Below are positions 30,654-64,000 of a stretch of DNA of 64,000 nt, in pieces. The first letter of the stretch is position 1, and the number at the start of each line of letters is the position of its first letter. Both the position numbers and the translations under genes were made by a program. The notes under the pieces were generated by a model. The model was not told the origin of the DNA and ran no database searches. It was given only the letters and a program-made list of their open reading frames with translations. Origin of the DNA: Lepidodermella squamata (lineage: Eukaryota > Animalia > Gastrotricha); the NCBI GenBank assembly GCA_047495785.1, contig JBLDXI010000024.1, positions 2,666,001 through 2,730,000 of the forward strand, given 5' to 3'.

Positions 30654-30736
30654 TCACATTGATTGCAATTTCCTGAGTCAACCGTTTGTACCTCGCTCGA
30701 GTCACATGTTTTTCATCCTCTGTTTTTACCCCAGCT

Positions 30737-31873
30737 ATGGCATTGCTAAATAAATGCTTTGTTGTGTACTGTCTCTGCAAATTCGCAATATCTGCTCCCC
30801 TTGTTGATGATCCGGTAGAGATAATCCTGAGCAAATGTCGAATGCAGCCGTTCATCAACTCACCTGGTGAAGTATCGGGCAGTTCGACTCCGATTAACTT
30901 AGATTTCAGGCTAGATCGAATAATCGGAATTGACGATGTCGAAGAGACGTCCGTTTTCATTGGCTTAGCCAGGTTATCATGGAATCAACCCTGTCTTCAA
31001 GAGATAGCGGCCGAAATTTTCAATGCAACGCAAATGGCGATACTCCAGTTAAACGGCGACGCCGTTGACAAATTATGGTGGCCGCCTATCTACCATCGAA
31101 ACAGCATGGACGACATTGAAATGAGTGCTAAATTTGCTAAAATTCGCCGTGTTTTTTTCAGCAACGGCGAAAATACGATGCAGTTCACAGGGACGTTTTA
31201 CTCCTACTGCGATTTAGATCTTCGCCTGTTCCCATTCGACAGTCAAACATGTTGTGTGACATTTTACACGATGGCTTATGGGCTCACGCAATACGTACAC
31301 TTCAATTCAACATTATTAGACAAATTCCGTGGCAACTTGAATATCATGCCAGCCGGGTCGATTTGGGAGTTGACGGGAAACTCAAGTCGGATACAGGGCG
31401 GAGATAGAGCCGAATTTTGCGTTAATTTGAAACGAAAATCAGACTACTATATCATCAACATTTTGTTGCCGAGTTTTATTCTCTGTTTCCTGCAAATATC
31501 ATGCTTCTTGCTTCCGGCGAATGGCGAGGAAAGATCGAACCTTGGCTGTACAATTATGCTATCGATCTATGTGCTTCAAAGCCAAGTTTTAGGAATTTTG
31601 CCAATGACGGCTCAGCCTATTTTAGCGGGATATTTCTTTCTTGGTCAGACGATTTTTGCAACAGTATGCATAATCTATTCAGAGGCCATATGCCTCTATA
31701 TCAATGCGTATCCCGAGCAGGCCGATCGTAAAATTGTCATCAAATGGAACTCTGTAGAATTTGGAAAAACCACCTACTCTGCTGTAGTCGATGGCATATG
31801 CATCGCTGTGTTTATTTTGGCGCTTGGAATGTTCTGGAGCTGCCTCGCAATCGCTTTTTCATACACTGATTAA
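30737..31873 (+). CDS. Intronless Cys-loop ligand-gated ion channel subunit B1
   Basis: Single ORF: signal peptide, WWPPIYHRNS, Cys-loop CDLDLRLFPFDSQTC, LKRKSDYYIINILLPS (M1), GEERSNLGCTIMLS (M2), LP.TAQP, very short M3-M4 loop. Confidence 0.9.
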   Translation: MALLNKCFVVYCLCKFAISAPLVDDPVEIILSKCRMQPFINSPGEVSGSSTPINLDFRLDRIIGIDDVEETSVFIGLARLSWNQPCLQEIAAEIFNATQMAILQLNGDAVDKLWWPPIYHRNSMDDIEMSAKFAKIRRVFFSNGENTMQFTGTFYSYCDLDLRLFPFDSQTCCVTFYTMAYGLTQYVHFNSTLLDKFRGNLNIMPAGSIWELTGNSSRIQGGDRAEFCVNLKRKSDYYIINILLPSFILCFLQISCFLLPANGEERSNLGCTIMLSIYVLQSQVLGILPMTAQPILAGYFFLGQTIFATVCIIYSEAICLYINAYPEQADRKIVIKWNSVEFGKTTYSAVVDGICIAVFILALGMFWSCLAIAFSYTD

Positions 31874-32006
31874 AAAATCATTATTCAAATACAATATCAA
31901 CTCTTGCATCAAAATAACTTAACCATTGATCGCGATTTCCTGAGTCTACAGTCATATGCGCGATTCGCTATCATTCGCATTTCAATTTTCCACTCTGACT
32001 GGAGCC

Positions 32007-33134
32007 ATGTTGAATAAATTACCTGTCGTGTTTTGCTTTGTTACCTTGGTCAGATCAGCTCCTCTGTATGATGATCCGGTTGACATTGTTTTAAGCAAAT
32101 GCAGAGCCCAGCCTTTCATCAACTCACCTGAAGAGGAATCGGGCAAGCCTGTTTCAGTTAACGTAGATTTCGGCCTGGAACGGTTGCTTGAAATCGATGA
32201 TGTTGAGGAAACGACTCTTTTCGTGGGTATGGTTATACTATCGTGGAACCAATCCTGCCTGAAAGACATAGGCCCTGAAATTCTCAATGCAACAAAAATC
32301 AGGCAACTGATGCTAACCGGCGATGATGTGCAGAAGTTCTGGTGGCCTCAAATTTACCATCGAAACAGTGTTGATGACATTGCGATGAGTGATAAATTCG
32401 CCAAAGTTCGCCGAATTAGTTTCAATGAAGGCCTCAACAGAATGCAATTGTCGGGAACTTTCTACTCGTACTGCGATTTGGACTTTCGCCTGTTTCCTTT
32501 CGATAAGCAAACCTGCTGTTTGAAATTTTACTCACTGGGGTATATAGAATACGTTCAACTCAATTCTGTAGTAATCACCACACTTCGAGGCAACGTCGCA
32601 GTCATGCCTAAAGGCTCGATTTGGCAAATGTTAGGAGACAAAACCAGCATTAATATAAACAGAGATATTGCCGAGGTCTGCTTCAACTTGCAGCGAAACT
32701 CGGACTATTTCATAATTAACATTTTCGCTCCGAGTTTTCTTCTGTGTTTCTTACAACTATCCTGCTTCTTGTTGCCGGCGAATGGCGAGGGAAGATCAAA
32801 CCTTGGTTGTACAATTATGTTGTCGATCTACGTGCTGCAAAGCCAAGTTTTAGGCATTTTGCCAAAGACAGCCCAGCCAATTCTAGCGGGGTACTTCTTC
32901 CTCGGCCAAACGGTTTTTGCAACTGTATGCATCATCTACTCTGAGGTCATATGTCTCTATATCATAAATTATCCAAAGCATGCCGATCGCCAAATCTTGA
33001 TCAGATTTGGTTCTCGTAGCTTTGGCAAGACCACCTTCTCAGCTCTGGTCGACGGGGTGTGCATCATCGTGTTCATATTAGCGCTCGGACTGTTCTGGAG
33101 TGGTCTTGCTGTCGCTTACTCGTCTACACAATGA
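32007..33134 (+). CDS. Intronless Cys-loop ligand-gated ion channel subunit B2
   Basis: Tandem paralog of B1; CDLDFRLFPFDKQTC, GEGRSNLGCTIMLS; starts 133 bp after the B1 stop. Confidence 0.9.
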   Translation: MLNKLPVVFCFVTLVRSAPLYDDPVDIVLSKCRAQPFINSPEEESGKPVSVNVDFGLERLLEIDDVEETTLFVGMVILSWNQSCLKDIGPEILNATKIRQLMLTGDDVQKFWWPQIYHRNSVDDIAMSDKFAKVRRISFNEGLNRMQLSGTFYSYCDLDFRLFPFDKQTCCLKFYSLGYIEYVQLNSVVITTLRGNVAVMPKGSIWQMLGDKTSININRDIAEVCFNLQRNSDYFIINIFAPSFLLCFLQLSCFLLPANGEGRSNLGCTIMLSIYVLQSQVLGILPKTAQPILAGYFFLGQTVFATVCIIYSEVICLYIINYPKHADRQILIRFGSRSFGKTTFSALVDGVCIIVFILALGLFWSGLAVAYSSTQ

Positions 33135-38400: not shown

Positions 38401-40821
38401 TCATCGATTTGAGCCTATTTCTTGGTAAACTGAACCATTTTCGCCTCGTGCAGTTACGCCTCGCCGCTTCAGTAATCCTACTCCCCAGAAGACACCAGTG
38501 ACAGCTGAGAACGTCAGGGAACTAAACGATATCGCAATTTCCTGACCAACCTGGGTATCCTGAGTGACAACGATGAGTACAGCAGCCAGTTGCAACGTCA
38601 GACCATTCACAATGCTCAGACACATTGCATTTACGTCCGAGCATATAAAGTCGTTCGAATTTTTCAACAGTTGCTTGGTGCGATAAGTATGAAAACTTGC
38701 GTAGAACAACAGAGAAATATGAGCGATCACGAGGGCTAGTAGCCAATAGATGCTATTTGCTGTACGGCAGTAGTACTTTAAAATAGTGTAAGCAGTATCG
38801 CTAGCAGGGTTGTAATTTCTTGCGGAGGTGTTTGTTTCGGTGTAGCAACGCAGCGAATCAACGGTGAGCCAAATTGTTACGAAAACAAGGTTAACACCAG
38901 TGAAGAATAAGCTGAAAAGAATCACTGGCTTCGCTGTGAAAGATTCGATCTCTGTTCTAGCTCGATTATTTCCAGACGTTCCGGCCGAAATACGCGAAGA
39001 CGATGGTTTCGATTGAGTAATTGACTGTTTCTGAGTAGAATTAGAAGCGTTTGTAGCAGTGCGAGGTGGGGTGCGTTTAACCCTTGAGACTTTGGCGTAT
39101 GCGAGTAGACCTCGAAAAACTAGTGTGCCGTTCACTAGACTTGATCCTAACACCAAAAAAACGATGTCAATGATAGAAGTCGCCAGTAGGCCCTGACTAG
39201 AGCTGGAAGAAAAAGCTATGGCTGCGCCATTCAAGAAGAGACAGCCTAGGTATCCCACAGCCTTTCCGATTCCGAAATTCGACCGAAATCGTGGGTTTAA
39301 TGACCGAACTAATCCGGCTATTTGAAGAAAGGATAACAAAACAGAAAGCATGACGATTGATTCAAACACTGAAGGAGAGACCTCGGCAACAACTGTGAGG
39401 GTGATCGGCCGGTCTCTCGGCGGTAATCCATTTGTACCCCACTCTTGCCATGAAAACGCCTTGTCTTGAGCAACCAATTTGTAACGGCCATAGAAAAAAT
39501 CCGGCATTTGAGATTCAACTTCTTCAGAGATGAAAAGGTTGTGGTATCCAGTTGGGCGCCAATGTGTGTACACAATCAAGTCGTTTTCTTTGTACCCCCT
39601 CTTGCTGTACCTTAATTGACCTCGAAGGCCTGATCTGTTAACTAGTAGGACTGACTCATTCGCAACCTTCATGACTACTTGAGGTTGGTCGGCAATGTTT
39701 CGAAGGGACATGTTGTAGCGTTGTTTTAGCCGAAAATCAGCATCATGAAGTGCGAAAACAGCAGTAAGGGCTGCGTCATGGCAAATGTAGGACAGGCTAC
39801 CCTCGGGTATCCCATATTTCTTAATGCTCTCTGGAGTCATCATGACATTTCGCAGGATATCAAAAGATGCCTTATCCATGCCAAGCTCTGATTTCCTTTT
39901 CGAATCGACCACGCTGATGACTGACCCGGCGAATATTGTAGTTTTGAATATTTCAGCAATCATCTCGCGAGTGCATTGTGGCTCGAGAATTGAAAGTGCA
40001 ATGCTAGAGGGGTCATAAGCTAATAAGTTATTCATGATAAAAGTGTACTTCGAACCCCGAAATCCCAAGCGATGAGCCCTACATAAGACCTTCCAACCCA
40101 GAAAATCCTGCGTTACGTAAACGACTACAACCCTGATGTCGTGATACAGCAAGTCATAGATTACGTCATCTTCGATATCCATCATGAGATTGAAGTAAGG
40201 AATCGATATGTTGAGGGCATTTGCGTATTTTTGAACGAAAATCGCGGCCAGGTAGTCATTCGGGCTGTTGACGGAGGCGACAACTGCGATTTTTGACCAT
40301 TTACCAACATCGCGGATAAAATGAGCTAGGGACATTGCGACGAGTTCGCCAGTTGATGTTCCAAGGTAAAGATTCGGGTATTTAACGTGGTCAGCAAGTA
40401 TTGGCGAGCTGCAAACCAACGCTATATCGACCATGTTAAGGTGGTGGAGTACAGGACCGATGGTTTTGCAACCCGATGAGACAAAAGGCCCTATCATGAT
40501 CGGGGCTGGAAATGTGTTTGCCACTTTTTGCCCTTCCCAGTATCTCGAGAATGCAATGAGCTCTTTAATGGGGGTCGCACCGAGGAAGGGGTTGACTTCA
40601 TCCCTCACATCGGCGACAATGTTGCAGTCAGGCAGGATGTCACTTCGATTGTTCACCGCATCAATGACCACTTTGATCGAAGGATTGCAGCCCTCATTCT
40701 CAAATGCGAAAACTTGTAGGAAAGAGAGATTGTAAGGTTTCTGGAGGGCCTGGCTAGACGTGAGAGCCATTGCCAGGCATAGCCCGTTGATCGCCAAATT
40801 CATTATCGAAATATATAGCAT
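38401..40821 (-). CDS. Intronless class C GPCR (GABA-B-receptor-like; Venus-flytrap domain + 7TM), C1
   Basis: 806 aa: signal peptide, VNNRSDILP, IGP..S..C, SPILAD..KYPNL, GLRGQL, W..G.PPRD directly before TM1 (no Cys-rich domain), seven TM segments. Confidence 0.85.
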   Translation of the reverse strand: MLYISIMNLAINGLCLAMALTSSQALQKPYNLSFLQVFAFENEGCNPSIKVVIDAVNNRSDILPDCNIVADVRDEVNPFLGATPIKELIAFSRYWEGQKVANTFPAPIMIGPFVSSGCKTIGPVLHHLNMVDIALVCSSPILADHVKYPNLYLGTSTGELVAMSLAHFIRDVGKWSKIAVVASVNSPNDYLAAIFVQKYANALNISIPYFNLMMDIEDDVIYDLLYHDIRVVVVYVTQDFLGWKVLCRAHRLGFRGSKYTFIMNNLLAYDPSSIALSILEPQCTREMIAEIFKTTIFAGSVISVVDSKRKSELGMDKASFDILRNVMMTPESIKKYGIPEGSLSYICHDAALTAVFALHDADFRLKQRYNMSLRNIADQPQVVMKVANESVLLVNRSGLRGQLRYSKRGYKENDLIVYTHWRPTGYHNLFISEEVESQMPDFFYGRYKLVAQDKAFSWQEWGTNGLPPRDRPITLTVVAEVSPSVFESIVMLSVLLSFLQIAGLVRSLNPRFRSNFGIGKAVGYLGCLFLNGAAIAFSSSSSQGLLATSIIDIVFLVLGSSLVNGTLVFRGLLAYAKVSRVKRTPPRTATNASNSTQKQSITQSKPSSSRISAGTSGNNRARTEIESFTAKPVILFSLFFTGVNLVFVTIWLTVDSLRCYTETNTSARNYNPASDTAYTILKYYCRTANSIYWLLALVIAHISLLFYASFHTYRTKQLLKNSNDFICSDVNAMCLSIVNGLTLQLAAVLIVVTQDTQVGQEIAISFSSLTFSAVTGVFWGVGLLKRRGVTARGENGSVYQEIGSNR

Positions 40822-41580: not shown

Positions 41581-43935
41581 CTAGTGAGTCTTGAGCTTCA
41601 ACAACGGATATCCCCAGACAGCGGTAGACGAGACTGACAATGCAAGTGAGAAAAATGACATTGCGACAAATCTTTCGACATGAGTGTCGAGGGTCACAAT
41701 GACAAAAACAGTGGCTAACTGGAGTGTCAAGCTGTTAATCGGACTGAGCAACATGGCTGATGACTCGTGGCAAAAGAATCGTTTCGAACTTCGCAGCAAC
41801 TGTTTAGCCCGGTAGGAGTCATAACACCCATAGAACAAGAGTGACACATGCATGACCACAAGGCCTGCAATCCAATACATTTCATTCGCTGTTTTGCAAT
41901 AAGTTACCGAAACCTCATAGACTGTATCGGTATCCTTATCGTAATTCTTGCTAGATGCATCGATTTCGTTGTAACAACGTAGAGAGTCGGTTAACAGCCA
42001 AATTAGGATGTAAACCATGTTTATAGCAGCGAAAACCAATGCGAAAGCTATCGATGGTTTCGAAGTACTGGCCTCCAGGTCTACTCCACGGTTACTAGAC
42101 CTAGTTGCTCCTATTCCGAAACTTATCGCATTTATAAGCCGCCTCGCAGTTACTTTCGAGTACTCGGACGAAAGAATTGGGGCAATGAACGTGACTCTGT
42201 TACGCAGAATTCTGGCTGTAGCTAGCATCCCTCGAAAAGCTAGAATGCCGTTGATTAAGCTTAGCCCTAATAATAGGAGAACTAATCTGATGATATACGC
42301 TGTCATTTCATAACCATTACTTTTCGCTGAGAAAACAATCGCGGATGCATTCATGCAGGTACAACCGCAGTAGCCGACGATCAATGCTAGTCCGAAATGA
42401 AGTTTTCCCCGCATTTGAAGAGTAAGAGCGATAAGGATTAAGGTGGATACTGTGACAATTCCGGCTATAACTGTGACAGTTATGAAAACAGACTGCGGGA
42501 CTTCGGAGATCGAATAATTGACGATAGGTCCATCTCTCGGAGGTTGCCCCAAGTTACCCCAAGCTTGCCAAGTGAAACCTTTATCTAGTGCCACCAGCCT
42601 GTAACGGCCATAGAAAAAATCAGGCTTTTGCGATTCCACTTCCTCGGAGTAGAAGATATTATGGTAGTACCCATTTGGGTGCCAATGTGTGTATACAATC
42701 AGGTCATTTTCTTTGTATCCCCTCTTGCTGTACCTCAATTGACCTCGAAGACCGGATCTGTTTACTAGGAGGACTGACTCGTTCGCGACTTTCATGACAA
42801 GTTGAGGTTGGTCGACAATGTTTCGAAGAGACATGTTATGGTGTCGTTTCAGCCTCATTTCTGCATCATGGAGAGCGTAAACAGCAGTAAGAGCTGCGTC
42901 GTGACAAACGTAGGACAAACTACCCTCGGCGGCTTCCCACTTCCTGACAGTTTCAGCGGTCATCAATGAATCACGCTTCCTGTCAAAAGTCTCTTTGTTA
43001 TCCCCAAGCTCAGATTTCCGAGTTGGATCAAGAACATTGATGATAGAACCAGCGAAAATTGACGTTTTGAATTGCTCAATAATCATTGCTCGAGTGCATA
43101 GAGGGCCGAAAACGTTCTTAGGATCGATTGTGAGTGGGTCAGCTGCCACTACGTTATTCAATATGAAGGTGAATCTCGGACCTCGCATGCCTAGGCGATG
43201 AGCTTTACACATCAGTTGCCACACCGAGACTGATTGAGTTACGTATATCACGACAACTCGAATATCACGAGCTAGCATTTCATAGATGACGTCATCGTCA
43301 ACGTCAAGAATCAAGTTGAAGTATGGAACAGAAATGTTAAGCGCAACAGCATATTTTTGAACGAACATCGCACTTATGTAATCATTAGGGCTGCTAATAG
43401 AGGAAAGAATACCGATTCTTGACCATCTACCGACGTCGCGAAAAAAATGAGCAAGGGACATTGCTACTAGTTCTCCAGTTGATGTCCCGAGGTAGAGATT
43501 AGGATAGCTCACATGATCAGCGAGAATAGGGGAACTACAAACCAGAGCAATATCAACCATATTGACATGGTGTAGAACTGGACCTATTGCTTTGCAGCCT
43601 GTTGAAACGAATGGGCCAAGCATGATGGGAGCAGGGTATGTTGAGGCACTTGTTTTATTCTCCCAATATCTCGCGAAGGAAAGCAATTCCTTGAGAGCAT
43701 TTGCGCCCGAGATACCACCGGCCTCGTTTCTAGCATCGGCTATCAGGTTGTAATCAGGTAGGATATCACTACGGCTATTCACTGAGTCGACCACAACCTT
43801 TATTGAAGGCCCACAAGGGTCGTGTTCCATGGTGTAAACCTGCAGAAATGATAGGTTGTAAGGCTTGAATAACGCAGTTATTAACCCGGGATGGAAAGCT
43901 GCTATCCCAGAAATAACTAGAAGAATTGTCTTCAT
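41581..43935 (-). CDS. Intronless class C GPCR (GABA-B-receptor-like), C2
   Basis: 784-aa tandem paralog of C1 with the same motifs. Confidence 0.85.
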   Translation of the reverse strand: MKTILLVISGIAAFHPGLITALFKPYNLSFLQVYTMEHDPCGPSIKVVVDSVNSRSDILPDYNLIADARNEAGGISGANALKELLSFARYWENKTSASTYPAPIMLGPFVSTGCKAIGPVLHHVNMVDIALVCSSPILADHVSYPNLYLGTSTGELVAMSLAHFFRDVGRWSRIGILSSISSPNDYISAMFVQKYAVALNISVPYFNLILDVDDDVIYEMLARDIRVVVIYVTQSVSVWQLMCKAHRLGMRGPRFTFILNNVVAADPLTIDPKNVFGPLCTRAMIIEQFKTSIFAGSIINVLDPTRKSELGDNKETFDRKRDSLMTAETVRKWEAAEGSLSYVCHDAALTAVYALHDAEMRLKRHHNMSLRNIVDQPQLVMKVANESVLLVNRSGLRGQLRYSKRGYKENDLIVYTHWHPNGYYHNIFYSEEVESQKPDFFYGRYRLVALDKGFTWQAWGNLGQPPRDGPIVNYSISEVPQSVFITVTVIAGIVTVSTLILIALTLQMRGKLHFGLALIVGYCGCTCMNASAIVFSAKSNGYEMTAYIIRLVLLLLGLSLINGILAFRGMLATARILRNRVTFIAPILSSEYSKVTARRLINAISFGIGATRSSNRGVDLEASTSKPSIAFALVFAAINMVYILIWLLTDSLRCYNEIDASSKNYDKDTDTVYEVSVTYCKTANEMYWIAGLVVMHVSLLFYGCYDSYRAKQLLRSSKRFFCHESSAMLLSPINSLTLQLATVFVIVTLDTHVERFVAMSFFSLALSVSSTAVWGYPLLKLKTH

Positions 43936-44644: not shown

Positions 44645-47196
44645 ATGATAACAAAATTAGCTGCCTTGATCATTCTGCCAAGTCTAGCGGCGAGGCCAGA
44701 TGAAGATTGGGTTGCCAGACCAGAATTCGCGAACAAGCTACTAACTACCTTGACTCCAATTTTCGAAGCGGAGACTAAAATCTCTGGAGAATGCTTTGTC
44801 TACTGCCAGATGAAAAACTGCGACAGTGTTGCGTACAGTAACTCGTTCAAGACATGTAAGCTCTATCAGCATCCTCCAAATGTAACAACACCACTACCGC
44901 CGCTGCGGCTCGATCTCGATTTTCAGCACCAAATGTACCACAAGCGACAGTTTTGCCCGCCTGATTGGGTAATGGATCCAGATAGCAATATCTGCTATTA
45001 CATGAATGGAATGAACACCATGGTTGATCGCAACTCGGCATGGAAGTATTGTGAAGAGGCCCATGGTTCAGTTCTGGTGACATTCGAAACACCCGAACAG
45101 CGATCCTTTCTTTACTCGGTAATTTACGAACGCAAACATTTTTAGGCGAAATTTCATTTCTTTCCGCAGGTACTTCGAAACAGTTACAGCACTATTTCGA
45201 AGTGGTGGACTGGGTATGCTTTGTTTGACTCGAATCTTTGGAGCCGGCCTGTCGAGGAAATCAGTGGCTACGTGAAGAGACGCGGCGACTGTGGGGGTAG
45301 CGACATAACAACCCCAGTATGTCAAGCTGTCTCAGGCCCTCAGCAGTGCGCTGATCGCTGCGATCGAATGTATGGCAGTCAATGCGTGGCGTTTGTTTAT
45401 GTGAAATTAACCAAAATGTGCTGCCTGAAGTACAGGTCTTGTGAGAACCCTGCAGCGGATCTGACATCTGAGATCTGGGTTTACGAAAAGGTTCACGCAG
45501 ATCGGCCACCTTCAGCTACACTGTCCAACTCGCAATGCCCGAACAATGACATTAAAAGCATCACAGGCGTGACCAGAAAAAAGTGTAACGAAGCGTGTTT
45601 AAGCACGCTTGGCTGTGTATCCTATGCTTACGCAGTATCAACATCAACTTGTTGGTTGAAGTACAAAACTTGTTACGATGTATCACGAAGTGCTGGTAAC
45701 CCAGCTGTTGTTTATTACGAATTCGACAGCAATAGCCCAGGAGTTTGCCCTTACGGCATGCGATACAGGGATGTATGTCTATCTCTACATAAATCTTACA
45801 CTAATTACAACGGGGCTACATCCAATTGTCGGAAAATGGGCGGGAAATTGGTTACTCCAAGCGGCCTAATGAAACGAGCCTTGATTTCGTTTTACATGAA
45901 AACACTTCCAGTCAAGAGGCACGCTTGGATTGATTGGGTGGATGACGGCCACGAGGGCAACTGGACCACAGCGGATTCAAGCCTAACACTACTGGACCCG
46001 TTTTACGATCGATGGGTCTGGTTGGTGGGGTAATTTTTCTTGAATCACTAAGCTTCGATAAAGAAACTTGCTTTTGGTTTAGGGGCACTGAACCTAATGG
46101 AGGCACTGCGGAAAACTTTGCCGATTTGTACGTCGGGCAAATGGATAAAATTAATGGTTTATTGGTATGCGTTCTCATTGACGTTAATCCAAACGATGCA
46201 ACATTATGGCCAATCTGTGAAACGCGTATAACATTTTGGTCGCGCTCAGTTTTTTGAGGTTAGGATGTTCTCTTTTCAGCGATTTCAATGTCATGGCCGG
46301 ATAAATGCCGTTTCACTCCTAATGGTCGCGAGTACTACGGAACTGTATCTCAAACTGTTAGCGGAGTGGCTTGCAGGACATGGGACCATGCTAATAATAC
46401 ATACAGAGCTAACTGGCAAGCCTATCCAGACTGGTACCTGAGCCACTCGTACTGCCGCAACCCAGACCCGAACCTATTTAACAACAGCGTTTGGTGCTAT
46501 CGAAGCGACAACGGTCAGCCTGAGGCCTGCAACGTACCAATGTGCCGTAAGTTATTCTAATACCGTAACATAATGTTTCACGACGAAATAATTTCAGCCG
46601 AATCTGACTGGGCGAACGGGCAGATTTTCAACAGCGTCTCTTACCCGCACGCCGCCATTTCGAGCTCGCCATCGGCGTCGGATGGCTACGACTGGACCAC
46701 AGAGCCATTGACGGGCACAGCAAATGCTCTGTGCAAGATGAAGACCGAAGAATGGTGCCCGTACTACTTCAAAGGCAGTTGCTACAGAGTGTACAATCAA
46801 CTGGTGACATTCGACGAAGCTAGTGCTATTTGCAAGAAAAACAATTGGCACTTGGCGTCGATCACAAGCTACGACGAGCAGAAATTCGTCCAGAGTTTCA
46901 CAATGAATGCAGGAGGTGAGTTGTACTTTCAAATTCGACACAGCATCTTACAAATTTTGAAAATAGGCATGTACTTCACCCCCGATGTTATATGGATTGG
47001 ATTGCGAAACAGTGCTAATGTCCCTTTGTCTACTTGGGAAAATGGCGAGCCTGCTGCTTCTTTCTTCTATAACCCAGGTGAGCCGAACGGAGGCGGTACA
47101 TCTTGTGCTGGCATTTGGACAAATGCTGGTCTTTGGGCAGATGCTCCCTGTACTGACAAATTCTTTTTCATCTGCGAGACTGAGATTGGCCGGTGA
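44645..47196 (+). CDS. Secreted PAN/apple + C-type lectin + kringle multidomain protein, paralog L1 (6 exons)
   Basis: Signal peptide, PAN (ECFVYCQMKNCDSVAY..CKLY), CTL motifs, kringle (NGREYYG..SG.AC..W..YCRNPD..WCY..C.VP.C), terminal CTL with WIGL, EPN, WAD, FICE. Confidence 0.85.
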
Positions 47197-48035: not shown

Positions 48036-50744
48036 ATGCTGGCCATATTTGCTGTTTTGCTAATTCTGCCTATCCTGGCGGCAAAGCCAGATGAAGATTG
48101 GGTTGCCAGACCAGAATTCGCGAACAAGCTACCAACTACCTTGACTCCAATTTTCGAAGCGGAGACTAAAATCTCTGGAGAATGCTTTGTCTACTGCCAG
48201 ATGAAAAACTGCGACAGTGTTGCGTACAGTAACTCGTTCAAGACATGTAAGCTCTATCAGCATCCTCCAAATGTAACAACACCACTACCGCCGCTGCGGC
48301 TCGATCTCGATTTTCAGCACCAAATGTACCACAAGCGACAGTTTTGCCCGCCTGATTGGGTAATGGATCCAGATAGCAATATCTGCTATTACATGAATGG
48401 AATGGATACCCCGCTCGATCGCAATGCAGCTTGGAAGGTCTGCGAGGAGACACATGGGTCAGTTCTGGTGACCTTTGAAACACCCGAGCAGCGATCGTTC
48501 CTTTACTCGGTTTGAGAAAGAACCGCCAATCACATATCCTTTGACATTACTTTATTACCAGGTACTTCGAAACAGCTACAGCGCCGTTTCAAAGTGGTGG
48601 ACTGGGTATGCTTTGTTTGACTCGAATCTTTGGAGCCGGCCTGTCGAGGAAATCAGTGGCTACGTGAAGAGACGCGGCGACTGTGGGGGTAGCGACATAA
48701 CAACCCCCGCATGCCTATCAGTCTCAGGCCCTCAGCAGTGCGCTGATCGCTGCAATCGAATATATGGCAGTCAGTGCGTGGCGTTCACCTACCTGAAATT
48801 AACCAAAATGTGCTGCCTGAAGTACAGTTCTTGTGAGAACCCTGCAGCGGATCTGACATCTGAGATCTGGGTTTACGAAAAGGTTAACGCTGACCGCCCG
48901 CCAAGTTACTCTACCACCGTCCAGTGTGGCAATATTGACATGAAATCAATACCAAACACTACTTTTAAGCAGTGCAGGGATGCTTGCCAGGCAACTATGA
49001 GCTGCATTTCATTTACGTTCTACTTGGGCACTTGCTATCTGAAGTACAAGTCATGCTTCGACGTTGACAAGACCGCAGCTGCGAATATGGTCTTCTACGA
49101 ATACGGCATCACCAACCCGGGCGTCTGTCCATTCGGTCAGCGTTACAGGGACGTCTGCCTCTCCCTCCATAAAGGCTATACAACTTTTTCTGCAGCTGCT
49201 ACAAGCTGCCGTAAGATGGGTGGTAAACTGATGACCCCGACAGGCACTATCAAGCACTCCCTAGTTTGGAATTACTTGAGTAGACGACTTTCGGCAAAGC
49301 GAGATGGCTGGGTTGATTGGTTGGATGATGGTCACGAGGGTAACTGGACGACGATGGATGGCAGCTTGACGCTGCTCGACCCATTCTATGATCGATGGCG
49401 TTGGATGTCGGGGTAAGTTGATTCGACTTCGATCTCTTGAATGAATCTTCCTCCAGTATTTAAGTATTTGCATATTTACCCAGAGAGCCTAATGGCGGGA
49501 CCAGCGAAAATTTTGGGCCAGTAACTTATTACTACACTAATACTGTTAACGGCTTTTCCATTGCCCCAATTTTCGACTCAAATCCAAACAGCGCCAAATG
49601 GCCACTTTGCGAAACGCGTAATAAAACCTAATAAGACCTACCATATCCTTTACCAAATGTAATTCTTTTTTAAGCAATATCCATGTCGTGGCCTGATGAT
49701 TGCCGTTTCACCCCGAATGGCCGTGAATACTATGGAACTGTGTCACAAACTGTTAGTGGTGTCGCATGCCGAACATGGGATCACGTTAACAACACCTACA
49801 GAGCTAACTGGCAAGCCTATCCGGACTGGTACCTAGGCCATTCGTACTGTCGCAACCCAGACCCGAACCTGTTCAACAACAGCGTGTGGTGTTATCGAAG
49901 CGACAATGGACAACCAGAGGCATGCAACGTACCTATGTGCCGTAAGTTGTCTATCTTAAGTTAGCGTCCCAAATAAAGGAAGTTAGGTCTCGATGTAATT
50001 GTAAAGTTTTGGGGGAGGGGGGATGAGAGGGTTCAGATTCTCTCACATCAATAAAATCATCCAACATCCAATTCCCGAAATAGTAGCCAACCTCCTCAAA
50101 ATAATACTATTTTGACTTGGTTGCTTTTCATCCCTTTCTTAGCCGAGTCTGATTGGGCTAATGGGCAGATTTTCAATAGCGTCTGGTATCCTCATGCAGC
50201 CATATCGAGTTCGCCTACAGCTTCAGAAGGTTACGACTGGACCACGGAGCCGCTGACTGGAACTGCAAATGCGTTATGCGAAATGAAGGCTGAGGACTGG
50301 TGCCCGTACTACTTCAAAGGTAGTTGCTACAAGCTGTACAGCATACCATCAACTTATGATGAGGCGAATGTTATCTGCAAGAAAATCAATTGGCACCTGG
50401 TTTCGATCACCACCTACGACGAGCAGCAATTTATTCAGAGTTTCACGATGAACGCTGGAAGTGAGCTCAAAATCACCTAGATTAGATTAGATCATGTTCC
50501 GAATATTTTTCTAGGAATGTATTTTGGCACGGGATTTTTGTGGATCGGACTGCGAAACTATGGGAGTGTCCCATCTGCAACATGGGAGAATGGCGAGCCT
50601 GCGACTTCTCTTTACTACAACCCTGGAGAGCCGAACGGCGGTAACTCATGCGCTGGCATTTGGCAGGACAAAGCTGGACTCTGGGACGATACGCCGTGTT
50701 CTAGCAGGTGCTTTTTCATTTGCGAGACTGAAATTGGCAAATGA
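48036..50744 (+). CDS. PAN/CTL/kringle protein, paralog L2
   Basis: Same exon and domain layout as L1. Confidence 0.85.
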
Positions 50745-51419
50745 GATTGGCCTATGCGAAGGATGACTTGAGCTATAAAGCTATAGTTGAATGACATTAT
50801 TCGTTCCGATTAATGAAGGAATCAGACTCGGTAATTCCTGATTGTTGAAATGAAAGTTCCGGGTTTACGGAATGTATAAGATATCAGGTAGAAGTTGAAA
50901 ATAAATGAGGTAGAAGTTGAAAAGGCATCACCGAATTATAAGGCACATACCCTCAAATGCGAACACGCGAACGTCCGTAATCCACTCAGCGAGCAATCCC
51001 TTGTGCGTTGTGTAAGTAAACAGTCGCTGGAAAGGACCGCAAGCTCATAGAATTTCGACGCCCAAAAATGAATTTTTAAGGTGGAAGCTGTTGCTTTAGC
51101 GTTTAGCGTACGTGATTTGCGTGCATGCATACTGCAATTGATTAGGTGAATTGAAGATCAATCCATAATAATAGACCGTGAAGCACTTAATTTGAAGGTT
51201 CAATTGTGACGTTAAATGTTGCGGGTGAATTGATGTCGCTGTTTTACAGTTTATGGTTATAAGGTGCACATTTTCCGGCCCGCCGGTGTTTCCTCCGCGC
51301 GCGCGCTCCTATTGGTTGGGGCTTATTGCGCAACATTTCAAACATTTCAAGATAATTATAGCCTCCCCCGCGCGCGCGCACTCGAACGCGCCCTGAGCTC
51401 CCGTGCGCTAAGTCTAAGT

Positions 51420-52130
51420 CAGTTTGCTGAAGTCGAAGACAAGCATGTTGCATGCTTTCCAACAAAAATCCCAGCAGGAGAGCTTCGCTATAAGGCGAGA
51501 CGGCTCGAAGGCAAGATTATGCAGCCGAGGCCGGAATGCCCTCGCTGTAGCAAATGTCAAAGCTTCAAACATGCTCGCAAGAACTGTCGCTCAACCTGGA
51601 AGTGTCCTCATTGTGCCGGGCCCCACCCATTTAACCATTGCCAGGTCAAACACGATGAACAAAAGAGGCAGTGCGCTAACTGCAACTCGAATAGCCATGG
51701 CGCCGGCTGGAGGGGTTGCTCGAGTCTTCGAGAGGCGCAAAACGTTGTCATCAAACGAGTCAGACTTGATGTGAAAAAGATTCTGAACCATGACAATATC
51801 GCAGCACCTTTGAATCAAGCTGATAAACCAGCACAGCCAGAACCGAAAAATCAACCAGGCGGTAACCGACCGCCTCAAAGAGACACTACAAAAACTCAAT
51901 CTAATGAGCTGAATGTCGAAATAAAAAGTCTTGTAGCAAAACTCGATGCACTGGCCGACGCACTTGCTGCTGTCTTGCAAGTCATCGCCACCACCAACCC
52001 AGGCGCGGCTACTGCCCTAGCTGAGCCCTTCAAAAACCTTCAAAATGCGTTCAACAGGACCTCGGCGCAAAAGCCTCGAGAAGATCGTGCAGATAAACAG
52101 ACCCAAAATTCAACGGAAGGAGACTGGTGA
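51420..52130 (+). CDS. LINE ORF1 (gag-like), 5'-truncated, three zinc knuckles
   Basis: CSKCQSFKHARKNC, CPHCAGPHPFNHC and CANCNSNSHGAGWRGC, typical of Jockey/I-group ORF1. The 5' boundary is approximate. Confidence 0.8.
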   Translation, partial: QFAEVEDKHVACFPTKIPAGELRYKARRLEGKIMQPRPECPRCSKCQSFKHARKNCRSTWKCPHCAGPHPFNHCQVKHDEQKRQCANCNSNSHGAGWRGCSSLREAQNVVIKRVRLDVKKILNHDNIAAPLNQADKPAQPEPKNQPGGNRPPQRDTTKTQSNELNVEIKSLVAKLDALADALAAVLQVIATTNPGAATALAEPFKNLQNAFNRTSAQKPREDRADKQTQNSTEGDW

Positions 52131-55025
52131 TCATCCAGTGGAACGCGAGGGGACTCTACCGGAAAAAGGCGGAGATCCTTAGAATTATTGAAAAATATCA
52201 TCCGCACATTATTCTTATTAATGAAACGCACTTTATTACCGATAGCACAGACGATTTCGAATTACCAAAGTATATCTCGTTCAGATGCAGTAGACTGAAT
52301 CAAGCATCAGGCGGTTCAGCCATATTCGTTCACGAATCTGTTCCAATCGACCGGCAACAGTACGCTAATAGAACAGCAGCCAGTGAATGGCTTGCCCTAA
52401 AGCTTAAGGATGATAAGGGCCGAGAGCTTATAATAGCAACCGGTTACACTTCACCAGACGAAGATATAGACTTGTCCTTCCTGGAAAATGTTCTCGGCGG
52501 AATCGATTTCAACGATACAGGAACCGCTTGTATCTTCGCAGGAGACCTTAATGCTTGGCACGATTCGCTTAAAACGGGAGGTAAAAGGAATAACGCATCG
52601 GGCATCGCCTTGAGCGAGTGGCTTGCTGCTGAAAATCATTACCTCTTAAGTGATGGTACCCCGACCCACTACTCACACGCAGGGGTGGGGCGGCAGATAG
52701 ATATTTGGCTGGCAAATGAAGCCGGTCGAGTACTGACGTCCAAACCTCCGACAGTTGGCCGAAAATTTGGCAGTGACCATACAATAACGGTAATGGACGT
52801 AGACTTTAGATCTTGTTCACCAACGGCGCAAGCAACCGCAGAATCTGAGCTTCGATATGACTGGAATAGGGTAAATTGGAGCAGTTTTCGTTCGCGACTT
52901 AAGGCTGAAATCAAATCAGTTGCGGAGCCTGTCAGGCCTAAACCAGGCGACTGCGTCACCACAATAGACGTATACCAGAAAGCAATAGTTAAAGCGATCA
53001 TGAACACCGTCGAAAAAGTAGTCCCCGTAGTACCAGCATGTAAAGTACAGACGTGGCAGCTGAACACTGAGATCGGCACCGCATTAGATCAGAGGAACGA
53101 AATGCAATCGCTATTCGATCGAACGGGGCTTCAGTTCGTTAAGAGCGAAGTAAACAAGCTGACCAAAAAGATCAAGGCCTTGGTGCAGGTTGAAAATGAG
53201 AAAGCCTGTAAAAAACACCTGCTGAAAGTTGCTAAGCACTTCAATGCTCGAATGAGCCGACCTGGGTGGAACGCCGCAAACCGACTGCTCAAAAAGAAAG
53301 CACGGCGAAAGACCATCGGTTCTCTCAAAGACGCCAATGGAAAAATAACATCCTGCCCCCATCAGAAAGCTCAGATACTAGCGTCGACCTTCGCAAAAGT
53401 AGTCGAATCGCCCCCTTCAAAAAACCCCTCGATTTCTAACGCTCTCTTTTGGTCACAGGTGGACAAAAAGTGTCTCCTTGAACCCAGGCTAAAACCTGTC
53501 TCGCACATTCCGGAGCACAAGGATACGAAGTTACGCATTCCAAAGAGTTCTATGCGAAGAATGGTAAAACTGTTGAAAAAATGGAAATCACCGGGTATGG
53601 ACGAGGTCCCAAACATCGTAGTAAAAGACGGAGGGAGTGCATTGTTGAGGCATCTCAGATGCCTCTACGAAATGAGCTTGAACTGTGGCTATCAGCCAAA
53701 GCAGTGGAAGGTCGCCATTATCACGCCCATCCTCAAAGATGGGAAAGACGGTAGTCTTGCCTCATCGTACCGTCCTATCTCCCTGCTCTCATGCATAGGG
53801 AAAGGGCTGGAACTCGTCATCGCTTCCTTCTTCTCGGAATGGCTGGAAAAGAAATGCTTTCTGCCAAATCATCAGTTTGGTTTCCGTCGTAGGAGACCTA
53901 CAGTCGACCCGTTATTTAGGCTTATAAGCGACGCAGCGCTTGCTATGGCGAAGCATATGAAATTAGTTGCCGTTGCACTCGATTTTCGCGCAGCCTTTGA
54001 CTGCGTATGGCACAACGGCCTTAGAGATAGGTTGATGCAATGCGATGCCCCGGACTTCATCTTGAGATGGGTCTCAGATTTCCTAAGCGACCGCTCATTT
54101 TGTGTCAGAATAGACAATAAAGAGTCCGATTTTTTCCCCATACGATGCGGTGTCCCTCAAGGGAGCCCGCTATCACCTTTGCTGTTTATTTTTTTCACTT
54201 CCGACATGCAGGAAAAGCATTGCGAACCCAACGATGCATTTGCACCCGGGTCAGTGGCTCGAGCGACGTTCGCCGATGATGCGCTCAACTGGGCAGCAGC
54301 TAAGTCCTATGGCGCAGCATGCCGAAGACTGGAAGACAAGCTGCAGGGAGTCACTACGTGGTGCGACAAGTGGAGGCTGGAACTGAACCTTCTGAAGTGT
54401 GAAGTAATGGTCTTCGGGTATTACAACAGAAGGCCGAAAGCTAAAATGAAACTCAACGGTAATCTTATCCCGCAAGTTTCGTCACTCAAATACCTTGGCG
54501 TAACGCTTACACCACGCTTAAGCTGGGACGAGCATCTATCGAGGCTGTCTTCGAAAGCTCGACCAAGAGCGGGTATCATCCGATCGGTGATGAGCAAGGG
54601 CGTTCTAGATCAGAATCTGGGAATCCTGTTTCATCGAGCAATGGTTGAAAGTTTGCTAATCTACGGCTGCCCAGCTTGGCTGTGTCTTTGTCCAACAGCA
54701 GAAGCCAAACTCATTTCGCTGCAAGTGCCTCAGGGCAGCCCTAGACCTGCCATACGAAGCTGACGACGCGGGTACAATCGCACTTTCAAGTGTGCCCTGC
54801 ATCACCGACACTTTCGAAAAAATGTCCGCTAAGTACATCGAAAGGTCCTTCCACAGCAGCAAAGTCATGGCCGACTACATCGCTTACGTGTCGACTTGCA
54901 AGTTCGATAAGAAGCAACAAAAGTATCTACTCGAGCACTGCCCAGCATGGCGACTGAAAAAATACATTCCGGCATTTATTGTCTACGAAGAAACCGCCCC
55001 GGAAAATTGGATAATTACTAATTAG
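52127..55025 (+). mobile_element. LINE ORF2: AP endonuclease + reverse transcriptase (Jockey/I-group-like, no RNase H seen); frameshift near 54721
   Basis: APE motifs QWNARG, INETH, GGSAI, GDLNA, IDIW, GSDH; RT motifs KSPGMD, YRPISLLS, QFGFR, DFRAAFD, GVPQGSPLSP, FADD, KYLGV. The C-terminus KCLRAALDLP...WIITN* continues in another frame. Confidence 0.92.
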
Positions 55026-58001: not shown

Positions 58002-61000
58002 ATGTTCACCTACTTTTTCATCGCTCTAATAGCATTGCCGAATCTTGATGCAAGGCCAGATGAGGACTGGCTTGGCAGATCAGATTTTGCCAACATGCTG
58101 CCATCAACATTGAGCCCGATTTTCGAAGTGAAGGCAGAAATATCCGGGGAATGTTTCGTCTACTGTCAGATGAAAAGCTGTGACAGCGTAGCATACAGTA
58201 GCGCATTCAAATCATGCAAACTGTATCAGCATCCACCAAACTTAACAACGCCCCTCCCGCCTCTACAACCTGACCTGCAATTCAAAAACCAGATGTACCA
58301 CAAAAGACAGTTTTGTCCCCCTGATTGGGTAATGGACCCAGATAGCCGGATCTGCTATTACATCAGCGGTATGAACAATGGGGTTGATCGCAATGCAGCA
58401 TGGAAGTTCTGCGAGGAAGCTCAAGGCTCGAGTCTCGTGACGTTCGAAACCCAGCAGCAACGAAAATTTCTTTACACGGTACAGTGAACAGTGTAGAAAA
58501 GATATAACAATAATGACCCATTTTTATCGCCACAGGTACTTGGAAACAATTACGGGACCATTCCAAAGTGGTGGACTGGTTACGCATTATTCGACTCGAA
58601 TCTTTGGAGCCGCCCAGTAGAGGAAATCAGCGGCTACGTCAAACGGCGAGGCGATTGCCCCTATGGCGATATAACAAGTCCGGCTTGCATACCAGCCTCC
58701 GGTCCCCGGGAGTGCGCTGATCGCTGCGACCGTCTCTATGGCAGCCAATGTGTGGCATTTGCCTTCCTGAAATTGACCCGGATGTGCTGTCTAAAGACTA
58801 AATCTTGCGAAATACCCACCGCCGATCTGACATCGGAAATTTGGATGTACGATAAAATCCATGCAGATCGCCCTGCGGCCAATTTCGCGAACTCACAATG
58901 CGCAAGTGTTGACATCAAAGGGATAGATGGCTTAACTAGAAAACAGTGCAATGACGCGTGTCTTAGCACGCCTGGCTGTGTCGCTTATTCACACGTGCCA
59001 TCGACATCACACTGCGTGTTGAAGTACAAAGGTTGCATCTCCGTGGGGAAGACTGCTGGCAACCCAGCTGTTTCGTACTACGAATTCGGCAGTAATAACC
59101 CTGGAGTTTGTCCCTACGGTCTTCGCTACCGAGATGTTTGCCTAGCTGTGAGTACAACTCAAACAGATTTTTACCCTGGCGCCACAACGTGCCGAAAAAT
59201 GGGTGGGAAATTGGTGACACCGTCCGGCTTGCTAAAACGAGCCTTGATTTCGTCATACCTAATGCAAATTAGGTCTCTAATAGACAGTTTATGCTATGTC
59301 GATTGGATAGACGATGGCCATGAAGGAAACTGGACTACCATTGATGGTAGTTTGACGCTGCTCGACCCATTCTACGATCGATGGGTGTGGTGGATAGGGT
59401 AACTCAGCGCTTCTCAAACGGTGGGTCGCGACCCCCGCGGGGGTCGCGGGCCCTTTTTTCGTGGGTCGCCGAGTCAGCCGGAGGTCGCGGGGGTCGCCTG
59501 TTGCTTTTCATAAAACTTGAATATTGCAAAAAATTTGGTTCATTTTTAGTCACTCTTCCAGAGAAAATCTTTAAAAATAGCGTTAGCTAAAGCTCGCTTC
59601 GCTCGCATCCAATTTTATTTGACTAAAAACCGTCTGAAATTGCTGTTGAGAGCCGAGTTCATGTATATTTCGATGAAATTATGTGAAAAAATGCTGTACA
59701 TTGGGTGATATTTTATTGCTTGGACCCAAAATGCTTGAAGTTTTGAGCATATTTTCCCACACTGAAAAATTGAAAAAATGCAAAAAATCGCTGGGGGTCG
59801 CAGCCTGGTAAAGCATTTTGATTTTGGGGTCGCTAGGTGTGCGGTGTTGAGAAGCCCTGGGGTAACTGCTTCTTCTGAGAAATGAAATTTTTTCATTTTT
59901 TTTAATTTCGCATCTCAGCGGTACGGAGCCTAATGGCGGGACACAAGAAAACTACAGTATATTACACTATAATAAAATCGACGTCATCAATGGCTATTCA
60001 AGTTATGCTCTCATTGACGGGGTCGGAATATGGCTGTCTGCCTGCGAAACGCGTAAGGAAAAGGCTTTTCCCTAACCGCACGGCATGCCATTTTCCTGTA
60101 ACTCCTTCACTTTAATAGCCATTTCAATGTCATGGCCAGAAAACTGTCGTTTCACACCGAACGGCCGTGAATACTATGGAACTGTATCTCAAACTGTCAG
60201 TGGGGTGTCTTGCAGGACTTGGGATCACGTCAACAATGCCTACAGAGCCAAATGGCAAGCCTATCCGGACTGGTACGTGGCTCACTCGTACTGCCGCAAT
60301 CCGGATCCGGGCCTTTTCAACAATAGCGTCTGGTGTTATCGAAGCGACAACGGCCAACCAGAAGCCTGCAACGTGCCTATGTGCCGTAAGTTTTCGTTTT
60401 AGTTTTTAGGCCTATCCATCATCCTTCAAATTGTATTATGGTTGATTCAAACCCCGATTTAATCGCGAAGAAATTTCGTAAAAGATTTGACCCACCTCAA
60501 CATATTACGACATAAAACTAAGAGCCGTTATGGAAAAGAAAGAATGTAAGAAATGAAAGGCCACTTCTTTCTTATGAACTTAAACTCAAAACGGATACAT
60601 ATTTCCTTGTCATAGCCGAGTCTGACTGGGCTAATGGACAGATTTTCAACAGTGTCTGGTATCCTCACGCTGCTATAACGAGTTCGCCATTGGCGTCGGA
60701 TGGCTACGACTGGACTACGGAGCCACTGGCTGGTACGGCTAATGTCTTGTGTGAAATGAAGGTGGAAGACTGGTGCCCGTACTACTACAAAGGCAGCTGT
60801 TACAAGGTGTACAGTGTTTTGGCAACGTATGACGAAGCTAACGCTATCTGCACGAAAAACAAATGGCACTTGGTCTCTATTACTAGCTTCGAGGAGCAGA
60901 AATATATTCAGAGTTTTACGATGAATACAGGGAGTGAGTACTTAATACATACTGACGCTCGTACACTTACTACGGCTTTTTTAACAGGAATGTATTTCAG

Positions 61001-62957: not shown

Positions 62958-64000
62958 ATGTTAGCCTTAATTACTATCCTGATTCATCTACCAAGTCTGG
63001 CCGCAAGGCCAAATGAAGATTGGGTTGCGCGGCCGGAATTTGCGAACATGCTGCCATCAACATTGAGCCCCATTTTCGAAGTTGAGGCTAAAATATCTGG
63101 CGAGTGCTTTGTCTACTGCCAGATGAAAGACTGCGACAGCGTGGCTTACAGCATTTCATTCAAATCATGCAAACTGTATCAGCATCCGCCTAATGTAACG
63201 ACGCCCCTTCCTCCTCTAATACCAGACCCGCAATTCCAGCACCAAATGTACCACAAACGACAGTTTTGCCCACCCGACTGGGTAATGGACCCAGATAGCA
63301 ATATCTGCTATTACATGAATGGAATGAACACCATGCTCGACCGCAATTCGGCATGGAAGTATTGCGAAGAGGCCCATGGCTCAGTTCTGGTAACGTTTGA
63401 AACACCCTCACAGCGATCCTTTCTTTATTCGGTTAAGAATGAACTAATATAGTTTCTAAATCCTAAAATAACGAGGCTACTGTAATGCTCACAGGTTCTG
63501 AGAAACAGCTATAGCACTATTTCGAAGTGGTGGACTGGCTACGCTTTGTTCGATTCAAATCTTTGGAGCCGCCCTGTGGAAGAAATCAACGGTTACGTAA
63601 AACGGCGAGGCGATTGCATGGGGAATGATATAACAACGCCAGCGTGCCAATTAGTCTCAGGCCCTCAACAGTGCGCTGATCGCTGCAATCGAATATATGG
63701 CAGTCAATGTGTTGCGTTCACCTACTTGAAATTAACCAAAATGTGCTGCCTGAAGTACAGCTCTTGTGAGAACCCTGCAGCGGATCTGACATCTGAGATC
63801 TGGGTTTACGAAAAGGTTAACGCTGACCGCCCGCCAAGTTACTCTACCACCGTCCAGTGTGGCAATATTGACATGAAATCAATACCAAACACTACTTTTA
63901 AGCAGTGCAGGGATGCTTGCCAGGCAACTATGAGCTGCATTTCATTTACGTTCTACTTGGGCACTTGCTATCTGAAGTACAAGTCATGCTTCGACGTTGA
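62958..64000 (+). CDS. PAN/CTL/kringle protein, paralog L4 (5' part; runs off the window)
   Basis: Signal peptide MLALITILIHLPSLAA, PAN domain, CTL N-half; exon 2 starts at about 63495. Confidence 0.85.

Follow-up and report, generated by a model that had tools for sequence, protein, structure and literature searches.

A C-type lectin-like domain predicted to be split by a four-domain insert in a tandem gene family of the gastrotrich Lepidodermella squamata

Introduction

Few extracellular folds have received as much study as the C-type lectin-like domain (CTLD), whose long loop region has known plasticity. Here we describe a family of secreted mosaic proteins in which a CTLD appears to be interrupted, at the position of this loop, by four complete domains. 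The genes lie in tandem in a 64,000-nucleotide stretch of the Lepidodermella squamata genome (hereafter the window; GenBank assembly GCA_047495785.1, contig JBLDXI010000024.1, positions 2,666,001 to 2,730,000). We refer to them as L1 to L4 and to the two segments of the interrupted domain as the N-half and the C-half; positions are those of the window unless a contig is named.

Chains that leave a domain, build others and return have been described outside this fold. In integrin β subunits, the βA domain is inserted in the hybrid domain and the PSI domain is tied to EGF1 by Cys13-Cys435, a disulfide that spans >400 residues (PMC12383024). A survey of domain insertions recorded 48,551 events, with inserts consistently smaller than their hosts, and insertions are present in ~20% of multidomain proteins; neither "lectin" nor "kringle" occurs in its main text (PMC13114784). 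No published account of a split or nested CTLD came up in our own literature searches, in line with a first-pass annotation of the window, made from the sequence alone, which had called the architecture unfamiliar from described proteins.

Results

Domain order of the tandem genes

The window holds three complete tandem genes (L1-L3) and the start of a fourth (L4), all on the forward strand, in eukaryotic DNA with a GC content of ~0.43 and very short introns. Each complete gene is made up of six exons, separated by introns that measure 41-520 nt (41-54 nt in L1), and all three encode the same series of modules: a signal peptide, a PAN domain (PAN1), the CTLD N-half, two further PAN domains, a complete inner CTLD, a kringle, a 50-residue C-half and a final complete CTLD (Table 1). 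No membrane segment is encoded. The first-pass annotation had read a split CTLD around a PAN-PAN-CTLD-kringle insert, followed by the C-half and a final CTLD, in L1-L3 and in the start of L4; the gene models return the same order, and Pfam confirms the PAN, Lectin_C and Kringle domains in it.

Pfam searches of the window genes were run exon by exon, and joined forms were built only in local scripts (gene models, a local hidden Markov model (HMM) and substitution rates). For L1, exon 1 gave a weak PAN match, exon 2 a pair of PAN domains plus the beginning of Lectin_C, exon 4 was filled by the kringle, and exons 5 and 6 carried the halves of Lectin_C. In an intronless paralog, PAN1 matched PAN_1 at E 3e-12. 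The inner and final CTLDs pass Pfam Lectin_C, unlike the split domain, and the C part of the inner CTLD, once joined to a CTLD N-half, lifts the score on the local HMM to 53 bits. An EPN motif is present in the inner CTLD of L1-L3 and in the final CTLD of L1 and L2; the final CTLD of L3 reads QPD there.

The N-half of L1 comprises ~86 residues across intron 1, with the landmarks FCPPDW...AWKYCEE...LVTFETPEQ...KWWTGY...LWSRPVEE. The C-half reads ESDWANGQ...YPHAAI...GYDWTTEPLTGTANALCK and corresponds to the first 50 residues of exon 5 (to ALCKMKTE). Between the halves lie 394 residues, which agrees with the earlier proposal of a disulfide-locked loop of about 400 residues displaying four domains as far as the insert is concerned; the predicted loop itself, from Cys136 to Cys627, is longer (491 residues). 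Linkers are short, with 8 residues from the N-half to the first inserted PAN domain, 1 from the last kringle cysteine to the C-half and 7 from the C-half to the final CTLD.

The inner CTLD has cysteine irregularities of its own. In L1 and L3 it carries a cysteine at C2 (L1 residue 474, ~46170) that is without a C3 partner, and the L1 total of 39 cysteines is odd; L2 has lost the C2-position cysteine as well.

The two halves are predicted to complete one fold

We propose, at a probability of roughly three in four, that each gene encodes one secreted chain with a discontinuous CTLD whose two segments form one domain. A natural intronless paralog (L038:3094-5421:+) was modeled in unaltered form. 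AlphaFold2, supplied with an 88-row alignment whose row placement was checked, gave predicted local distance difference test (pLDDT) values in the 80s for the N-half, a drop to 45-54 directly after it, and block means of 58-80 for the C-half strands (residues 607-612, 617-622 and 627-635). In VIA-align superpositions, whole solved single-domain CTLDs fell on residues 109..638 of this model, with Z of 14-15.7 and 118-129 residues aligned. Non-swapped CTLDs did so at a root-mean-square deviation (rmsd) of 2.1-3 Å, the last aligned residue always being 634-642, as for CLEC9A (3vpp_B; Z 14.8, rmsd 2.7 Å, 118 aligned of 122), struthiocalcin (4uww; Z 14.7, 2.1 Å, 120 of 130) and LOX-1 (1yxk_A; Z 14.4, 2.8 Å, 127 of 130); convulxin (1umr_A) and other snaclecs reached Z up to 15.7 at higher rmsd. 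Because the N-half provides only ~88 residues and 118-129 are aligned, the C-half must supply the remaining 30-40. Foldseek, run with all 776 residues of the model, mostly retrieved multi-domain chains, with factor XI apple domains, plasminogen and HGF NK2 among its matches, and was uninformative on the split.

ESMFold2 was run without alignments on a 93-residue N-half and a 46-residue C-half supplied as two chains. The interface score (ipSAE, interaction prediction score from aligned errors) was 0.74, 0.74 and 0.75, compared to 0.22 for the best control (unrelated partners scored 0.22 and 0.01); that mark is attained by 51 of 78 solved complexes and by 2 of 108 mismatched pairs. The runs shared at least 90% of their contacts (146-159 contacts, partner pLDDT 73-75). 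The contacts predicted with most certainty joined CYLLQ to NGICS (β1 with β5) and WW72-73 of the WIGL-like strand to β3/β5, and placed the helix-1 cysteine Cys37 against Cys42, the sole cysteine of the C-half (construct numbering), with an expected error of 0.8 Å. By prediction, the paired halves show the two helices, the β1-β5 pairing and the adjacent termini of a CTLD. Outer disulfides C1-C4 and C0-C0' would be retained, the cysteine positions being invariant and the C1-C4 contact predicted. Both predictors thus place the halves together as one CTLD, as the first-pass annotation had anticipated for such a structure prediction, in the paralog rather than in L1-L3.

The four inserted units match Pfam PAN, Lectin_C and Kringle and count as autonomous domains, and the host segments are not self-sufficient. 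A reading in which the C-half extends the final CTLD was discarded: folded with the final CTLD alone, the C-half was unplaced (pLDDT 35-48), and the final CTLD of the paralog is complete by itself, matching solved CTLDs at Z 16-17.4 over construct residues ~52-192.

The two-chain result also indicates that the halves are able to associate as separate chains. The N-half of one molecule might accordingly pair with the C-half of another, in an extreme, snaclec-like swap that would yield disulfide-linked dimers or chains. The presence of loop-swapped snaclecs among the best structural matches, convulxin at Z 15.7 for example, speaks for such an arrangement, and a tether of ~390 residues does not compel closure within one chain. 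However, AlphaFold2 closes the domain inside a single chain, and the short linkers on both sides hold the ends of the insert near the fold. We consider pairing between chains unlikely, although it is the strongest of the alternatives to intramolecular closure.

Sequence signal and conservation of the halves

Sequence comparison clearly identifies the N-half as the leading half of a CTLD. Seven of the eight PDB matches to part 1 of the L1 N-half are CTLD-containing chains (C-type lectin domains, snake-venom lectin-like proteins and mannose-receptor-family receptors), covering CTLD residues ~4-51 at E 0.012-1.1. Against a local CTLD HMM of 124 positions, built from 40 canonical domains collected in this analysis, the N-half scored 9.5-20.8 bits over positions 1-62, and the C-half 0-3 bits.

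The C-half is conserved over 36 distinct copies. In hhalign comparisons with a CTLD alignment, these copies occupied columns 83-125 of 125 in the register expected for a CTLD, with W..GQ on W..GEPN, H on C2, the tryptophan of YDW on that of WND, L on C3 and the last cysteine on C4. This register agrees with the earlier reading that H and L replace the inner-disulfide cysteines and that the last cysteine is kept. Across copies, C0, C0' and C1 in the N-half and one cysteine in the C-half, at the C4 column, are invariant, giving an even total. The C2 column (H/Y/F) and the C3 column (L/I/F and others) are non-cysteine in every copy, leaving no inner C2-C3 disulfide; Q-I/V-F/Y stands at EPN and W-T-T/V at WND, so that in this register the motif pair of Ca2+ site 2 is absent. 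The even cysteine number and the joint loss of C2 and C3 fit a shared fold.

We compared nonsynonymous (dN) and synonymous (dS) rates among L1-L3. The C-half shows a dN of 0.04-0.06 with saturated dS (1.3-1.9), and its dN/dS ratio (ω) of 0.03-0.04 approaches that of the kringle (0.01-0.03); values for the N-half (0.09-0.13), the final CTLD (0.11-0.13), the inner CTLD (0.07-0.14) and the two inserted PAN domains, PAN2 and PAN3 (0.08-0.18), are higher. The C-half is under very strong purifying selection, on par with the kringle and tighter than the recognized CTLDs, and with dS this high, gene conversion is excluded as the source of the conservation.

Several results weigh against a shared fold. 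Even at E 10, Pfam returned no Lectin_C match on either half, and in the full-length intronless paralog Lectin_C was matched at residues 660-771 only, so that the split domain gives no match above the Lectin_C gathering score. Joining the halves and scoring them on a Lectin_C-type HMM, a check suggested by the first-pass annotation, gave a negative result: on the local CTLD HMM, the joined form did no better than the N-half with a shuffled C-half. A phmmer search of the C-half against the PDB returned no match, a six-sequence C-half profile gave chance matches only (GnT-I and exostosin, E >= 0.1), and the hhalign P for the C-half was only 0.04-0.08, which is marginal. Support for the fold and the disulfide is computational throughout, and the folded paralog is ~38% identical to the window genes and is not one of L1-L3 itself; the full-length AlphaFold2 model is mediocre overall (mean pLDDT 57.6; C-half 49-80), and its pairing was deduced from alignment ranges and lengths rather than from coordinates. 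Structure predictors have also learned the CTLD fold and may be filling it in. Finally, a family member with uninterrupted halves, lacking the insert, was not found, and the insertion event is undocumented.

Taken at face value, the weak sequence signal and the moderate pLDDT of the C-half would suit a second alternative, in which the halves are unpaired: the N-half would be a decayed CTLD remnant, the C-half an unrelated conserved linker or small module, and the predictions pattern completion. Yet a remnant would leave the helix cysteine unpaired, and a linker would carry a lone cysteine, whereas both cysteines are invariant in at least 36 copies and in four distant relatives. The ω of the C-half is far from linker-like, unrelated partners scored only 0.22 and 0.01 in the ESMFold2 test, the C-half was unplaced when the N-half was absent, and the hhalign register agrees with CTLD landmarks column by column. 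We regard unpaired halves as slightly less probable still than pairing between chains, and favor a single intramolecular CTLD.

A separate observation concerns the 5' end of the genes. The region encoding the signal peptide and PAN1 differs little between L1 (44645-44950) and L2 (48036-48341), with a dS of 0.12, compared to >0.45 to saturated values in the rest of the gene, which suggests recent gene conversion or partial duplication confined to the 5' end of L1/L2.

One transcript and one polypeptide

Splice evidence was drawn from contigs of a public sequencing run that behaves as RNA and shows no depth between genes. One joint in L1, 46546>46598, connects the kringle exon to the C-half exon across a GT..AG intron. 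In L2, the joints 48508>48561, 49411>49483, 49617>49675 and 49941>50143 account for introns 1-4 of five, and the kringle exon is again spliced to the C-half exon at GT..AG. In addition, two intronless paralogs (G000:C32:569093-571420 and C7:1765646-1767985) each encode the full layout, from signal peptide to final CTLD, as one uninterrupted frame, 777 aa long in the first and 811 aa in the second; with no stop codon between the halves, these rule out separate genes. The paralog frames and RNA joints together place both host segments and the insert on one polypeptide. Separate transcripts, which the first-pass annotation had named as one finding that would overturn its proposal, are thus not what the RNA joints and open frames support.

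A gene-model artefact, with the part up to the kringle and the C-half plus final CTLD belonging to separate genes or transcripts, is very improbable: metagenome gene callers do stop the protein at PMCRK, after the kringle (P0001, P0004, P0005), and the RNA contigs are short, none covering a whole mRNA, but the PMCRK ending is read-through of a conserved phase-1 GTAAG donor, and the C-half exon itself lacks both a start codon and a signal peptide.

One further locus departs from the usual length. L049 (G000:C7:1771000-1775200, reverse strand) holds a 1099-aa frame in which residues 1-547 run on, without a change of frame, into residues 226-776, at 99.5-99.8% identity to the L038 gene. This internal tandem duplication would double most of the insert and cut one kringle; it could have arisen by recent rearrangement or be an artefact of assembly.

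Spread in the genome and distant relatives

Profiles of the N-half and the C-half were searched against the genome (121 Mb, 151 contigs), yielding at least 57 N-halves and at least 50 C-halves. A C-half lies downstream on the same strand for 49 of the 57 N-halves, at 1.3-3.0 kb in 46 of these cases; the smallest distance is 1314 nt. These counts and the pairing of the halves show that the layout is not due to chance. The eight apparently unpaired N-halves were considered as genes without a C-half, a reading that is countered by tblastn at the five loci fetched, four of which have a divergent C-half followed by a final CTLD; at the fifth, L051, tblastn found a kringle only downstream and no C-half.

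Outside this genome, relatives were detected in metagenome contigs only, as four distinct sequences of 26-34% identity. All four keep the N-half, insert, kringle, C-half and final CTLD, and their C-half sits on its own phase 1-1 exon. A search of representative proteins found no annotated full-length relatives, just truncated metagenome open reading frames (ORFs); a scan of metagenome contigs for full-length relatives found nothing, a word-index search with a 776-aa paralog found no full-length relative, and a look-alike search of the ESM Atlas returned short PAN + Lectin_C clusters only. The family is large, unannotated and lineage-restricted, and consists of secreted PAN/CTLD/kringle proteins.

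Two features of the metagenome contigs stand apart. On the contig that carries P0004, the reading frame of the C-half exon (L002:1946-2100) slips by 1 nt immediately ahead of the conserved cysteine (...STANAP, then CRVPMRE in the next frame), which is either an assembly error or a pseudogene. On another contig, L001, a Neur_chan gene adjoins the lectin gene.

Feature coordinates and neighboring genes

Table 1. Positions of the genes and of the encoded domains in the window
Feature	Position	Strand	Description
L1 gene	44645..47196	+	763 aa; secreted mosaic protein; all introns GT..AG, frame open throughout
L1 exons	44645-45118, 45170-46029, 46083-46225, 46280-46546, 46598-46915, 46967-47196	+	GT..AG gene model
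L1 likely signal peptide MITKLAALIILPSLAA	44645..44692	+	hydrophobic N-terminus, as read from the sequence
L1 PAN1, N-terminal PAN/apple-like	44756..44893	+	Pfam PAN_1 E 0.001, 19.3 bits, slightly below cut-off
L1 N-half, part 1	44951..45118	+	β0/β1, helix 1 with Cys136 (codon 45050-45052), helix 2; ends at phase-0 intron 1
L1 N-half, part 2	45170..45259	+	KWWTGY (WIGL-like strand) to LWSRPVEE, exit point of the chain; alignment-based
L1 insert domains 1 and 2, two PAN/apple	45284..45724	+	Pfam PAN_1 E 3.4e-08, PAN_4, PAN_2
L1 insert domain 3, complete CTLD with EPN	45743..46224	+	phase-2 intron 46030-46082 inside; Pfam Lectin_C 23.7 bits on N part
L1 insert domain 4, kringle	46303..46545	+	own phase 1-1 exon; Pfam Kringle E 4.3e-14
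L1 C-half (ESDWANGQ...YPHAAI...YDWTTE...ALC)	46600..46749	+	predicted strands β3-β5; only cysteine Cys627, codon 46732-46734
L1 final complete CTLD (EPN...WAD)	46753..47193	+	intron 46916-46966 inside; Pfam Lectin_C on both pieces
L2 gene	48036..50741	+	layout as L1; N-half 48342-48509 + 48562-48651; C-half 50145-50294
L3 gene	58002..61214	+	layout as L1; N-half 58311-58478 + 58536-58625; C-half 60618-60767; intron 2 of 520 nt
L4 gene start	62958 (approx.)..64000	+	signal peptide, PAN1, N-half 63264-63431, PAN domains; leaves the window; C-half at G000:C24:2731270

Two introns differ in length between the genes. Intron 2 of L3 (59399-59918) compares with 53 and 71 nt in L1 and L2 and contains GC-rich self-complementary runs GGGTCGCGACCCCCGCGGGGGTCGCGGG; a small mobile-element insertion is likely. 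Intron 4 measures 201 nt in L2 and 51 nt in L1.

The tandem array is interrupted between L2 and L3 by ORFs of 288 and 878 aa (51264-54763, +). Directly upstream of the array lies a tandem pair of intronless ORFs (806 and 784 aa; 38404-40821 and 41584-43935, both on the reverse strand). Both have a Pfam ANF_receptor ligand-binding region (E ~1e-13 to 1e-14) ahead of hydrophobic segments, and they resemble receptors of the class C GPCR-like type. Further upstream, two tandem ORFs of ~395 aa (30686-31870 and 31956-33131, both forward) carry Neur_chan_LBD, the ligand-binding domain of Cys-loop receptors.

Discussion

Our data suggest the following arrangement. The first ~86 residues of the host domain would form β0, β1, both helices and the WIGL-like strand, and the chain would exit where the long loop region normally begins. 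After an insert of ~394 residues, made up of the four autonomous domains PAN, PAN, CTLD and kringle, it would return with ~46 residues that contribute strands β3-β5 and finish the sheet. Neither an inner C2-C3 disulfide nor Ca2+/sugar motifs would be present in the split CTLD (QIF for EPN, WTT for WND), and the retained outer C1-C4 pair would covalently close a loop of ~490 residues (Cys136-Cys627 in L1).

The absence of the EPN and WND motifs means that the split domain is probably not a lectin, and a structural clasp is its most likely role. Such a clasp would tie the first and last inserted domains together and turn a beads-on-a-string protein into a compact bouquet. Given the short linkers, one would expect the kringle to pack closely with the split and final CTLDs into a core, with the more variable PAN and inner CTLD modules extending outward. 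Ligand binding would probably fall to the faster-evolving PAN domains and to the inner and final CTLDs. With a signal peptide, no membrane segment and tandemly amplified genes, the family may consist of secreted recognition or adhesion proteins, and a part in immunity is also conceivable.

A more far-reaching and, in our view, rather doubtful possibility is that the ultra-conserved kringle and split CTLD constitute a rigid, disulfide-locked frame that displays fast-diverging PAN/CTLD modules, and that the tandemly amplified secreted genes, at least 57 in number, encode invertebrate recognition receptors. If true, a fold would serve as a clasp whose multi-domain display loop is threefold larger than the fold itself. 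Such a principle would be without precedent, and it would break the reported rule of inserts being smaller than their hosts.

A CTLD with four whole domains emerging from its long loop would represent a new extreme for this fold and for domain insertion. It also illustrates how domain-scanning pipelines can miss such genes, as both halves escape Pfam and the proteins called from metagenomes are cut short at the kringle. The family may offer a natural split-domain system for studies of folding order and of long-range disulfide formation.

Compared to canonical CTLDs (Pfam PF00059, including CLEC9A, LOX-1, struthiocalcin and mincle), the predicted fold superposes on nearly the whole chain (Z 14-15, rmsd 2.1-2.9 Å) and has the long form with the C0-C0' hairpin, the WIGL-like strand and the C1 and C4 cysteines. 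The split domain differs in being discontinuous, with four domains at the long loop region, in lacking the C2-C3 disulfide and EPN/WND, and in that Pfam misses both of its halves. Snaclecs (IX/X-bp, convulxin, rhodocetin) are the top structural matches (Z 15-15.7) and likewise have a long loop region that can leave the CTLD core; theirs, however, is a short loop swapped between two chains, without foreign domains, and the domain is continuous in sequence. Domain vocabulary is shared with short PAN + Lectin_C proteins from invertebrates, molluscs included, which make up the nearest ESM Atlas clusters (score 0.92), and with the PAN + kringle proteins HGF and plasminogen, which Foldseek matched, but these are linear proteins of 230-300 aa or have another order, and contain neither a split CTLD nor the eight-unit layout.

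The integrin β subunit is likewise an extracellular mosaic whose chain departs from a host domain, forms others and then comes back to it, with a long-range disulfide. Its folds are unrelated, and it has one domain per insertion level, whereas here four tandem domains occupy one gap and one of them has the host's own fold. The surveyed domain insertions follow the same A1-B-A2 pattern; in contrast to their size trend, the insert in L1 (~394 aa, four domains) is ~3x the host (~135 aa). Domain insertion itself is known, and what is new in this family is the host fold, a four-domain insert that includes a copy of that fold, and an insert ~3x the size of its host.

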